Positions 9,437 to 13,285 of a stretch of 64,000 nucleotides of DNA are shown here, in pieces (position 1 is the stretch's first letter; each line of letters opens with the position of its first letter). Location of the stretch: contig NC_043004.1 of the NCBI RefSeq assembly GCF_006345805.1, positions 56,978,001 to 57,042,000 on the forward strand, written 5' to 3'. Both the position numbers and the translations under genes were made by a program. Source of the DNA: Octopus sinensis. Taxonomy: Eukaryota. The notes under the pieces were generated by a model. That model saw only the letters and a program-made list of their open reading frames with translations. It was not told where the DNA came from and did no database searches.

Positions 9437-12400
9437 ACTTCACAGAGCTTTCTAGCAACTGCCATTTGGTGCATGAGAGAGTTCGATGCAGCTGCCCTCA
9501 TCTGCCCCTCCTGCCGTGAAGTTGGTTCATCTGGGACACCTGACAGGAAGAGATCTGCTTCATTTTAAAGACATTTGCATCCACCCCATGCAGGTCTCTC
9601 AGGTTCTTCGGAGGATATGAAGAGCTTGTGGGCCTCTGAAGCCCAGGCTATCACAGAATCTTGTCCTACATCTTGATGGCAAGTTTTTGAGTCCTAGGCA
9701 CCACGCAGTGGCGCCCGGTTCTGGCATTTGCGTAACTCTCGATGCCAAAGTTCAGGACACGTCCCTCCAGGATCTTCCATGTATGTATTATGGCATATCT
9801 TTCCCGCCTACGCTCCAGGGAATATAGTTTTAATCTCTTGAGTCTTTCCCAGTAGCTTACATTCTGCATAGAGGCTATCTTCTTCGTGTAGCTACGTTGG
9901 ATCGCCTCGAGCTCTGTGATCAACTTGACACTGGATGGTGACCATAACTGAGAGCAGTAGTCAATGTGGCTTAGGACAAGTGTCCTCCAGAGGACCATCA
10001 TGGTTTCTTGTTCTCTTGTTCTAAAGGTTCTGAGGATCCATCCGGCCAGTCGTCTACATTTCATTGCCAATTTAGCAACATGTACACGAAAGGTCGCGTC
10101 ATCACTCATGTAAATACCTAGGTCACGCACTGATTGTGCTTCTGGGATTGCTATTTCCCCGGGTCCAGTGTATTCATTGGGTATTGCATTTAGTTTTGCA
10201 TGCTGATAGTATAGAGCTTGAAACTTTCAGCATTGAACTGCATGCTATTCTTTTCGCCCCACTTGTATATTTTGTCTAGCTCACATTGCAGGTGTTTAGT
10301 GTCCTCAGGATTCTGTATTGCCTGTGAAACTTTTGTATCATCTGCATAACTTGTGATCGTGGCTCTCTGCGTGGCTGAGGGCATGCCTGAGAGGGCCATT
10401 ATGAACAGTAGTGGTCCCAGAACAGTGCCCTGTGGAACACCGCTCACTATTTGCGTGTTAATGGAAGTGGCCCCATTGGCCACTACCACCTGACTTCTAT
10501 CTTTCAGAAAATCATGAAGCCATTCTCCCAGTTTTGCAACTATGTTGAGATCACACAGTTTGTGACATATCATTCCATGATCGACTTTACCAAAGGCCTT
10601 TGCAAAGTCGAGATATATCACTTCCACACTTGAGTGGTTGAGCAGCCGTTTCAGCACCCAGTCATAGTGTTGTAGGAGCTGAGTTAAACAGCTTCTCCCT
10701 GGTCGGAAACCATGTTGGGTGTCGGGCAGCAAGTCATTCTCTTCAAGGACGGTGATCAGCTTCCTTCTGACTATTCGTTCCATGACCTTGCTGATGTGTG
10801 AGGTCAGAGAGATAGGTCTATAGTTCTTGGCTTCCGCTGTGCTACTTCCTTTATGAATGGGGCATATTTTACCTTCCTTCAGTTTTCTTGGAAGTTTGCC
10901 AGCTGCAGGAAGCTCTGAAAGAGGACTGCAGTGGTCTTGCTAGGACTCTCTTACATGCTTTAGGAGGATTGCCGGGAATCCATCGGGGCCAGTAGCTGAG
11001 TCTGTTTTCATTTCATCTATAGCCTTGGTTACATCGTCTTCCTTTATATCGATGTAATCTATCGTCGCCGCCTCTGATTTTATATCTGCAGTGGTAAAAA
11101 AGTCAGTTGGATTGGTGATTTGGAGATGCCCAAGGGGTGGAGTGAAAACACTCTTGAATTGCTCATTCAGTATTTCACTTACCCTCATTGGTTTTCCTGT
11201 AAGTGTGCCATCCTTTTCGAGGAGTGGCCCTATTCTACAGTGTACCGTAGCTGTTTCTTTTGCATACCTGTAGAAAGCTCTGGGGTTAGATTTTATGTTG
11301 TCTATAGCCCAGGCTTCTTTGTCTGCTCTTTCCTTTTCATGGGAGAGTTGTAGACATTTTTCGATTTCCAACAGTTTTATTTTTAGGCGGGACTTTTCAC
11401 TGCTTTCAATCTGTTTGTTTAGGCGATTTGAAAAATTTGTACGCCGTCTCATTAAAATTTTCCTCTCTCTGGGGATTTTGTTCTTGTGTACAGTAGCCTT
11501 TCTCTCTGGGACACATTTGTAGCATATGGCTTGCATTACAGACATGAATTGTTGAAGTTTGACGTCGATGTCTGGCGAGGAGAGACATTTAGGCCAGTTT
11601 TGTTTGAGGATCTCTTTCTCAATTTGTTTCCAGTTTGCCTTATGGTAGTTCAGGCTGGAAAGATTCTGAGGGTTTCTTGTAGGCTGCATGTCCGTGCTCT
11701 CTTTTGGCCCGTACATGGTCAGCTCTATCATGTTGTGATCCGAGAGTAGTGTCGGTGTCACTTTCACATTATGGATGAGATCCATGTCATTTGTGAAGCA
11801 GAGATCCAGTGTGTTACCTGCCCAGGTTGGTTGGAGTATTACCTGCACCATGTACAGGTGTTGATGAGGTTCAGAGGGACCTCGCCTGTCCTCGTTCACA
11901 TCTTGTCATTCCTGGGAGAGAAAGGCCCTCGGGCCATCTGACATTGGGCAGATTGAAGTCTCCCATAAGAAGTACACTTATGTGTTGTTCTAATGTGGTT
12001 AGAACTTCTCCTATTTTTATAAGGCAGTCTTCAAACTTGCCCACATAGCTTGGGGCATCTGGAGGGCGATATGTAGCACACACAACTACATCTAGATGCC
12101 TAATATGTACAATTAGTGTGTCACACACCGAGTTTGAGTATGACAAGAGGAGCTGGGGTGTGAGGTCCCCACGGATGTACATAGCAACACCTCCATGACT
12201 CCTTTCTTTCCTGTCGGTCCGTAGTACAGCATACTGTGGTATGTGTAACTCCGCATCTGCTATATCCGGTTTCAGGTGCGTTTCCGTAAGTGCTATGCAT
12301 AAGGCTTGATTGCATGCAACAAAGTCTCTCAGGAACGGGATTTTTGTCCTGTTACTGATTGTTTGCAGTCCTCTGATGTTCAGTAGGAGCATCGAGGTGA

Positions 12401-12536
12401 GGTGTACGTTGTTGCCGGCGGTGTCCATCCTGGGTCTGTTTGCTCTGTTGGCCTGGTATATAGTGGGTAGTCCCACCTGCGGGCTTGGGTTTGATGAAGC
12501 CAGGTCAGCTGCTGTACAATCTTTTGTGCCATGCAC
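9437..12536 (-). pseudogene. LINE A ORF2 (APE endonuclease plus reverse transcriptase), frameshifted
   Basis: Pieced from ORFs 11871-12536, 10940-11899, 10190-10783, 9666-10130 and 9307-9501, separated by single-base indels. Confidence 0.9.
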
Positions 12537-13285
12537 AAAAAAGATTGTTGCTCAGCAGCTGCCCTTTCGACAACATCATGTTGGCGGTTTGTGGCACGCA
12601 CAACATCTGCGTACCTCTGCTTTGGGGCAAGGGGTACGTGGGTCATCCCTTTTCTTTGTGTTGATGGTTTGTCCATCTGCCTCGTGTCTCTGTGGCAGGG
12701 TCCCCGATGTGCAAAGCGGCAGCCTGCACCTTCCTTTCCATGCCAGCAGGAACCTCTCAGGTAGAACCTACACACCCGTGTGCGCTGTTTGTTTCCATCT
12801 TTTGCGGTTCCACTTCTATTCCTGGTTTTTTCAACCTTTGGTCCTGCCTGGGCTTTTCCTTTAGCTCTTCCAGCCCTTCTTTTAGTTCTTCCTCCTCCCT
12901 CTACCTCTTCACCGGGTTCTCCGTCTCCATGTCCCTTGCTGCCGGTTGGAGAACTTGCACCTGGGTTCACTTCCCGGGCAGGTTTCTCATTCAAAACCTC
13001 CTCCATGGCATCCACCAGGTGGGGGTGACTTCTTTCATCGTCTCCATTCTTGCCATCTTTGCCCCGCTTGGTCTGAAAGATGGCATCAAGTGCGCCAATG
13101 TGCGACCGTATAAGCGCATATGAGCGCACGAATTCCCGTCTCTTTCGCTCCATCTGAGCCGCTGTCCTCTTGTAGCCTTTGTTCTTCAGCGCAGCCGCAA
13201 TCACCTCGCTAGGTCTATCTCTGTCGGCGCGCTTCCAGGCTCGTACGAATAAATCTAGTTCGTCAGGTCTCCATGCTCTGGACAT
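12380..13285 (-). CDS. LINE A ORF1: Myb/SANT-trihelix-like N-terminus plus CCCH zinc finger (301 aa, open)
   Basis: RAWRPDELDLFVRAW...VIAAALKNKGYKRTAAQMERKRREFVRSY fits the trihelix pattern W-x3-E...GY.RT..Q...K. CRFYLRGSCWHGKEGAGCRFAH is C-x7-C-x8-C-x3-H. Lies directly upstream of, and overlaps, ORF2. Confidence 0.8.
   Translation of the reverse strand: MSRAWRPDELDLFVRAWKRADRDRPSEVIAAALKNKGYKRTAAQMERKRREFVRSYALIRSHIGALDAIFQTKRGKDGKNGDDERSHPHLVDAMEEVLNEKPAREVNPGASSPTGSKGHGDGEPGEEVEGGGRTKRRAGRAKGKAQAGPKVEKTRNRSGTAKDGNKQRTRVCRFYLRGSCWHGKEGAGCRFAHRGPCHRDTRQMDKPSTQRKGMTHVPLAPKQRYADVVRATNRQHDVVERAAAEQQSFLCMAQKIVQQLTWLHQTQARRWDYPLYTRPTEQTDPGWTPPATTYTSPRCSY

Follow-up and report, generated by a model that had tools for sequence, protein, structure and literature searches.

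A stretch of 64,000 nt from the genome of Octopus sinensis (NCBI RefSeq assembly GCF_006345805.1, contig NC_043004.1, positions 56,978,001 to 57,042,000 of the forward strand; "the window" below means this whole stretch) contains a long interspersed nuclear element (LINE), here called copy A, whose first open reading frame (ORF1) has a three-module design. The frame is intact, with an ATG start, the N-terminal sequence MSRAWRPDELDLFVRAW and 301 codons before its stop, and it lies on the minus strand at 12380-13285. The first-pass annotation of this DNA had given this open frame and its extent, with the strand unstated; the plus-strand translation of the same interval contains many stops. Directly downstream, and overlapping it, is an ORF2 with an apurinic/apyrimidinic endonuclease-like (APE) region and a reverse transcriptase (RT). 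Judged from its sequence, the element is an APE-type two-ORF retrotransposon lacking long terminal repeats (non-LTR), with APE N-terminal to RT. ORF1 combines an N-terminal domain that is well supported, but not proven, as Myb/SANT-like, a CCCH zinc finger and a conserved C-terminal helix, the last of which was absent from the earlier account. The parts of copy A are as follows.

12380-13285, minus strand: ORF1, intact, 301 aa plus stop
13061-13279, minus strand: Myb/SANT-like three-helix domain, residues 3-75, isoelectric point (pI) 11.1 (Pfam, homology to copy B, AlphaFold2, Foldseek)
12791-13060, minus strand: linker, residues 76-165, rich in G/K/R/E, predicted to be disordered (predicted local distance difference test score, pLDDT, 43-57), weakly conserved and variable in alignment A1
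12707-12772, minus strand: CCCH zinc finger, residues 172-193, C-x7-C-x8-C-x3-H
12470-12613, minus strand: conserved C-terminal helix, residues 225-272 (alignment A1; AlphaFold2 helix at 233-272, pLDDT about 85)
12380-12428, minus strand: overlap of ORF1 and ORF2, 49 nt; ORF2 ATG at 12426-12428, in the -1 frame relative to ORF1
9669-12428, minus strand: ORF2, with APE at 11874-12428, a middle part at 10943-11905, RT at 10193-10939 and a C-terminal domain at 9669-10226
9411-9668, minus strand: 3' untranslated region (UTR), interrupted by an assembly gap of 100 N at 9311-9410
13347-13655, minus strand: tandem repeat immediately 5' of the ORF1 ATG, 86-bp unit, 3.6 copies, 80% matches

The 301-codon frame is not open by chance, since an exhaustive phmmer search of 1.84 billion representative proteins with copy A ORF1 as query returned 40 relatives at E<=1e-3, 11 of them at E<=1e-10. 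Full-length relatives include P0003 (291 aa), P0005 (289 aa), P0001 and P0002/P0041, and the relatives that carry an annotation all come from Octopus vulgaris or O. sinensis, where they are entered as 'hypothetical' or unnamed; no exact copy of copy A ORF1 is on record. A word-indexed homology search returned no relatives with ORF1 alone as query and two members only with the ORF1 family alignment. The alignment of the family (A1) has three conserved blocks, joined by linkers that vary in both length and sequence: block (i), W..E(L/M)..(L/F)..AW....PN..I..ALK..G(F/Y).R(T/S)..QIERKK.EF.RSY.LIRPH...LD; block (ii), CKF(F/Y)..G.CWHG..G.GCRFAHP; and block (iii), SYADAV......AA.EQ.SFL.MAQRIV.QLTWLH. 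For the full-length protein, AlphaFold2 with the family alignment predicted helices at residues 7-19, 25-35 and 42-74 (pLDDT 84-97), a finger with pLDDT of about 76-78, the long C-terminal helix and disorder elsewhere; two thirds of ORF1 are predicted to be disordered, and a Foldseek search with the full-length model was uninformative. One annotated O. vulgaris protein (P0008, at 9903-10050 of the O. vulgaris locus L001) begins within the Myb-like domain, and the first helix of its domain (QRNWTKVELEVFIRGW) lies upstream in another frame, so that this gene model is a frameshifted LINE ORF1.

The earlier assignment of the N-terminal domain to the Myb/SANT-trihelix type finds moderate support. 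PF13837 (Myb_DNA-bind_4) is the sole Pfam family that matches this domain in copy A, in the family consensus, in P0003 and in a second LINE of the window, copy B, and throughout these four queries the match spans profile positions 1-2 to 67-71. The scores of copy A (20.7 bits), the consensus (21.4 bits) and P0003 (19.2 bits) lie below the Pfam gathering score of 27 bits; that of copy B, obtained with its N-terminal 86 residues, is 28.9 bits. Members of the family keep the domain signature G-[FY]-x-R-[ST]-x-x-Q-x-x-x-K-x-x-x-[FL]-x-x-x-[YF], and helix 3 residues R40, Q44, R47 and K48 are at least 90% conserved. The domain holds 19 K/R and 9 D/E residues, and its pI is in our view more in keeping with Myb domains that bind nucleic acid than with SANT domains of acidic character. 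Modelled on its own, it is predicted by AlphaFold2 to form three helices, at residues 7-19, 25-35 and 42-60 (pLDDT 88.7, predicted template modelling score 0.70), and among PDB structures Foldseek matches this model best to the MYB domain of the plant protein RADIALIS (RAD; 2cjj), with probability 0.96, template modelling (TM) scores of 0.63/0.75, a root mean square deviation (rmsd) of 2.0 A over 63 columns and 24% identity. Among the other low-rmsd matches are the GT-1 trihelix domain, c-Myb R1/R2, the PHR1 MYB domain, the SMRT and ADA2 SANT domains and CDC5L.

Copy B is a diverged LINE 5 kb off, at window positions 14935-19147 on the minus strand, which has the ORF1 design in common with copy A and was likewise absent from the earlier account. 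Its ORF1 carries a Myb_DNA-bind_4 domain, a Q-rich linker and a CCCH finger with a degenerate duplicate of that finger. Both its ORF1 and its ORF2 are frameshifted, and for this reason the finger and the Myb domain of ORF1 stand in different frames.

18887-19123, minus strand: Myb/SANT-like domain of copy B (Pfam Myb_DNA-bind_4, 28.9 bits against a cut-off of 27, E=1.5e-6)
18432-18488, minus strand: CCCH finger of copy B, C-x8-C-x4-C-x3-H, in a frame other than that of the Myb domain
18259-18315, minus strand: degenerate duplicate of the finger
14935-17800, minus strand: decayed APE-RT ORF2 of copy B
14507-14833, minus strand: (TA)n tail of copy B

The relationship between the two Myb domains was assessed in a non-circular manner, using a profile of 20 domains of the copy A family (family A) from which copy B had been left out. 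With this profile hhalign gives a probability of 95.6% (E=1.2e-8), and hmmsearch gives 32.1 bits, with 1000 shuffled sequences reaching at most 9.6 bits; a family-A profile also matches the copy B domain at E=6.7e-10. By these sequence comparisons the Myb domains of copies A and B are demonstrably homologous. The corresponding family-A profiles of the finger (E=0.26) and of the C-terminal helix (E=0.11) have no significant match in copy B, and we therefore claim homology with copy B for the Myb domain only and treat its finger as a pattern match.

Three results weigh against calling the domain Myb/SANT-like. Copy A and most family members stay under the PF13837 cut-off, with E<0.01 in only 3 of 23 members; the Foldseek E-values are non-significant, 0.5 at best; and among PDB sequences no Myb protein was matched by the single protein or by two family profiles used as queries. 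However, the span of the Pfam match is constant, copy B is homologous and lies above the cut-off, and the predicted structure matches a MYB domain. On these grounds of sequence and modelling we regard the N-terminal domain as Myb/SANT-like, of the Myb_DNA-bind_4/trihelix type, an assignment that is well supported but not proven.

The CCCH motif C-x7-C-x8-C-x3-H, which the first-pass annotation had also read, falls at residues 172-193 of copy A (CRFYLRGSCWHGKEGAGCRFAH), and its spacing is identical in all seven of the family members that cover the region. Speaking against the finger are the zf-CCCH scores of copy A (16.7 bits) and P0041 (18.6 bits), both below the cut-off of 20.5, and the remaining Pfam CCCH models, which are likewise under their cut-offs. 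The closest PDB sequence matches of the finger are weak ones to the Muscleblind MBNL1/2 fingers (E about 0.02-0.04). The C-terminal helix at 225-272 has no Pfam match, and Pfam models of RRM/CCHC, transposase_22, PHD and esterase domains have none in copy A, copy B, P0003, P0005 or P0041. Two kinds of match to ORF1 were set aside: that to Pfam 'Torus' merely covers the region of the CCCH finger, and those to the PDB sequences eL24, S8 and Gfh1 are spurious.

The ORF2 of copy A is dead: its frame shifts twice, near 11890 and near 10210, and is interrupted by an in-frame stop at 10940-10942. The RT is recognised by RVT_1 at E=1e-20, and its best PDB matches are the RTs of R2 and of LINE-1 ORF2p, which mark it as a LINE RT without pointing to a clade. 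The APE region scores below the Pfam cut-offs (Exo_endo_phos, 23.7 against 24.5; Exo_endo_phos_2, 19.9 against 27.4), and the APE piece has no match among PDB sequences. That ORF1 lies directly 5' of an APE-RT ORF2, as first proposed for this locus, holds well beyond it: ORF1 is followed by APE/RT at six independent places, in at least four diverged families, and among these are two O. vulgaris chromosomes.

Window copy A, minus strand: ORF1 at 12380-13285, ORF2 from 12428
Window copy B, minus strand: frameshifted ORF1, then decayed APE-RT
L001, O. vulgaris OX597814.1: ORF1 at 10001-10789; APE, RT and C-terminal domain at 10936-13640
L006, O. vulgaris OX597829.1: 318-aa ORF1, 37% identical over its full length, followed by a complete ORF2
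L003, Logan contig from SRR22824287: ORF1 followed by APE/RT
L004, metagenome contig, 55% GC: ORF1 followed by APE/RT

L002, a seventh contig that like L003 derives from SRR22824287, stops a few codons into an apparent APE start. The ORF1/ORF2 overlap of copy A has its like in L006 and L004. At the nucleotide level the L001 element is about 69-71% identical to copy A, and a 5'-truncated O. vulgaris copy is 96% identical to it; this LINE lineage is abundant in octopus genomes. Between the linked families ORF1 identity is 25-37%, and ORF2 is much better conserved. The retention of the ORF1 design in spite of such low identity indicates that it is of long standing in the lineage and that selection maintains it as a component of the retrotransposition machinery.

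The LINE had been described as CR1-type, and several features are consistent with the CR1 group. The C-terminal domain of ORF2 carries the motif LKLYSLERRRERY, which we take to resemble the CR1 C-terminal motif. Every copy of these LINE families ends in (TA)n and not in poly(A), one of them in (AATC)n followed by (TA)n, and the tails are located as follows.

Window 6491-6593: (TA)n tail
Window 14507-14833: (TA)n tail, that of copy B
Window 21544-21786: (TA)n tail
L001 16951-17354: (TA)n tail
L006 12013-12030: (TA)n tail

Among CR1-group elements poly(A) is found in Zenon only, and repeated 5' subunits are known from the group (PMC13343379). The 86-bp tandem repeat at 13347-13655 may represent 5' UTR monomers of copy A; in the related elements L001 and L006 its place upstream of ORF1 is taken by CT-rich low-complexity sequence. 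With (TA)n tails in place of poly(A), the C-terminal motif and the 5' repeat, membership of the CR1 group is plausible from the sequence. Among relatives of known origin, those closest to the ORF2 C-terminal domain are crustacean proteins, unnamed or entered as 'hypothetical', from mantis shrimp, snow crab and porcelain crab (42-56% identity; P0045, P0081, P0098, P0102 and P0103; L007-L009). The copies retrieved from crustaceans and from other large contigs are all 5'-truncated, and those in L007-L009 lack (TA)n tails. A full-length LINE on an ENA contig (L010, 1630-5522) proved to be unrelated: its PHD-finger ORF1 is fused 5' of APE-RT, which is the classical CR1/L2-type design and makes it a contrast case.

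Both of the clean 5'-truncation junctions (2/2) directly adjoin (TA)n: at window position 23281 a copy meets a 409-bp (TA)n array (23281-23690), and at L001 13959 the copy is preceded by 'tatata' (13954-13959) and an assembly gap. As (TA)n stands at the junctions and in the tails and yet makes up only 6.5% of the window, the copies sit inside (TA)n tracts, and this suggests microsatellite-targeted insertion of these LINEs. Some caution is called for, as the junction evidence consists of two cases, one of them adjoining an assembly gap, and (TA)n is locally very abundant, reaching 36% of L001; in addition, a (UA)n RNA tail that anneals to (TA)n DNA, or the specificity of the APE, could explain the pattern without any part for the ORF1 protein (ORF1p).

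Within the window, five copies of the group lie between 6470 and 23281, all on the minus strand and partly head to tail.

14935-19147, minus strand: copy B
12380-13285 (ORF1) and 9669-12428 (ORF2), minus strand: copy A
8307-9310, minus strand: partial family-A copy
6641-8312, minus strand: partial family-A copy
21814-23281, minus strand: further copy of the group

The junction at 8307/8312 joins two partial copies without a tail between them, and may be a rearrangement or an assembly artefact. The 100-N gap in the 3' end of copy A (9311-9410) has a counterpart in the 3' end of the L001 element (L001 13854-13953), and both gaps probably mark unassembled (TA)n. Matches of 45 bp (about 83%) to the final part of the family-A 3' UTR occur at 3649-3693 and 51703-51743, each followed by (TA)n; these may be very short copies, or short interspersed nuclear elements (SINEs) that have the LINE tail in common.

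We propose, with a probability of roughly 0.7, that ORF1 of this APE-type two-ORF octopus LINE encodes a three-module RNA chaperone with a Myb end that contacts double-stranded DNA or RNA. Judging by its sequence features, the CCCH finger together with the basic K/R-rich linkers would bind, coat and chaperone the LINE RNA. The amphipathic C-terminal helix, by analogy with the coiled coils of other ORF1 proteins, may serve the self-association of ORF1p, and the Myb-like end is predicted to contact double-stranded nucleic acid. The likeliest partner of this end would be integration-site DNA, because the copies sit inside (TA)n microsatellites. The design of ORF1 thus suggests help in the choice of insertion site. 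A part for ORF1p in (TA)n targeting is put forward tentatively and with rather low confidence, by analogy with the Myb-bearing R4/Dong elements in (TAA)n (PMC7998251). The stronger proposal, that ORF1p is the target selector whose Myb/SANT-like domain reads (TA)n DNA and tethers the ribonucleoprotein there, seems unlikely to us as it stands. Autoregulation, the other role named in the first-pass annotation, would act through the 5' repeats and is a candidate only.

It is possible instead, at odds well short of even, that the Myb/SANT-like domain acts on RNA, for example on the structured or (UA)n 3' end of its own transcript, or that it is a protein or chromatin adaptor. As an adaptor it would resemble SANT domains, or the Myb-like protein of PIF/Harbinger in its nuclear import and recruitment, and the endonuclease together with tail annealing would by themselves account for insertion into (TA)n. 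The known LINE ORF1 proteins bind or chaperone RNA (PMC4120745, PMC13343379), the (TA)n tail present on every copy provides microhomology with a (TA)n target without a protein reader, and the predicted model permits no inference of sequence-specific DNA contact. Such a role sits less easily with a domain as basic as this one (pI 11.1), in which near-invariant R, Q, R and K residues occupy helix 3, the recognition helix of Myb domains, and which by Pfam and by fold comes closest to Myb/trihelix domains that bind DNA; moreover, Myb domains recognise target DNA in other LINE clades (PMC7998251).

Two further explanations would leave the protein without a Myb domain or the LINE without this protein. 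That the N-terminal domain is a generic three-helix bundle, with the Pfam matches being false positives on a short, basic, helical sequence, would account for the sub-threshold scores of most members, for Foldseek E-values of at least 0.5 and for the failure of the family profiles to match any PDB Myb sequence. We consider this very unlikely: PF13837, and no other family, matches the region in four independent queries over a constant profile span, homologous copy B exceeds the curated threshold (E=1.5e-6), the G-[FY]-x-R signature is conserved, and in structure the domain is matched best by a MYB domain (rmsd 2.0 A, 63 columns, 24% identity). An assembly artefact, or a host gene or a fragment of one that happens to lie beside a LINE, would suit the draft state of the assembly, in which a gap and duplicated pieces of LINEs occur close by, and also the octopus annotations, which give the relatives as stand-alone 'hypothetical proteins'. 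This explanation is effectively refuted by the recurrence of ORF1 followed by an overlapping APE-RT at six places, in at least four families and on two O. vulgaris chromosomes; the 49 nt by which ORF1 runs into the beginning of ORF2 are conserved as well.

Of all parts of a LINE, ORF1 is the one understood least, and few kinds of domain are known from it; a protein that joins a Myb/trihelix domain, of a DNA-binding type, to a CCCH finger, of an RNA-binding type, enlarges this repertoire by a new solution. A module known from the site-specific R2/R4 elements and from PIF/Harbinger accessory proteins is now seen in a LINE of APE type with two ORFs. Should the Myb end read target DNA, ORF1p can contribute to the choice of integration site and would be a compact natural tether from RNA to DNA, and the presence of (TA)n at both ends of copies makes a targeting role testable. 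Were ORF1p the target selector, these would be the first APE-type CR1-like LINEs in which ORF1, and not the endonuclease or a domain of ORF2, encodes the choice of site, and they would rank among the main forces behind the abundance of (TA)n in octopus genomes. In practical terms, dozens of 'hypothetical proteins' of O. vulgaris and O. sinensis are ORF1s of these LINEs or fragments of them, and are due for relabelling.

The ORF1 described here resembles those of the Jockey and CR1 groups (types I-V of Khazina and Weichenrieder; PMC4120745) in lying upstream of, and overlapping, an APE-RT ORF2, and in being modular, basic and about 300 aa long; in those groups ORF1 domains have been swapped between lineages. 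It differs in its domains. A survey of the Jockey superfamily lists ORF1s with RRM, CCHC, PHD, transposase_22, esterase and leucine zipper/zinc finger domains, besides those with 'no hits', and names no Myb/SANT or CCCH ORF1 (Metcalfe and Casane 2014, PMC4120745), and a 2026 survey of vertebrate CR1-group elements reports only esterase-type ORF1s, together with transposase_22-like ones in Daphne (PMC13343379). The RRM, CCHC knuckle, PHD, transposase_22, esterase and leucine zipper/zinc finger modules of these groups are not present in the octopus ORF1, which under the old scheme would be filed as 'type V / no hits'. The first-pass statement that no description of this architecture was known agrees with these two surveys and with the full-text literature, where a search for ORF1, LINE or non-LTR elements together with Myb, SANT or CCCH did not find the design; an uncommented Repbase or Dfam entry may exist.

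For a DNA-binding module in a LINE as such, the claim of novelty falls, as Myb domains were already known from R2 and R4/Dong (PMC7998251). In R2, an N-terminal Myb domain with zinc fingers directs insertion into ribosomal DNA (PMC7998251), and R4/Dong elements, with a diverged N-terminal Myb/SANT domain, insert into (TAA)n (Schön et al. 2021, PMC7998251). In the octopus elements, as in these, a LINE protein has a Myb-type three-helix domain at its N-terminal end, accompanied as in R2 by a zinc finger, and in each case the insertions are associated with repeats, be it ribosomal DNA, (TAA)n or, here, (TA)n flanks. In R2 and R4 there is one ORF only, whose RT protein contains the Myb domain and, on the C-terminal side of the RT, a restriction-like endonuclease. 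In contrast, the octopus LINE is of APE type and has two ORFs, its Myb domain resides in ORF1 and is of the trihelix type, and its finger is CCCH and not C2H2. The Myb-like accessory protein of PIF/Harbinger transposons, of which NAIF1 is a domesticated relative, acts with a DDE transposase and binds the transposon ends. It too is encoded by the transposon separately from the catalytic protein and has a SANT/Myb/trihelix-type domain; unlike PIF/Harbinger, the octopus element has neither a DDE transposase nor terminal inverted repeats, and the neighbouring gene is an APE-RT at 6/6 places. Outside the LINE family, phmmer and word-indexed searches returned no significant relatives of the Myb-like domain and identified no donor from which it could have been captured. 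The RNA-binding Muscleblind MBNL1/2 fingers (C-x7-C-x4-6-C-x3-H) are the nearest, if weak, solved-structure matches of the CCCH finger, from which the octopus ORF1 differs in having a single finger with an unusually long middle spacer of eight residues. The novelty claim thus stands for where the domain is found, in the ORF1 of an APE-type element, and for its CCCH partner: what is new is a Myb_DNA-bind_4-type domain in the ORF1 of such an element, together with a CCCH finger and with a C-terminal helix that is specific to the family.

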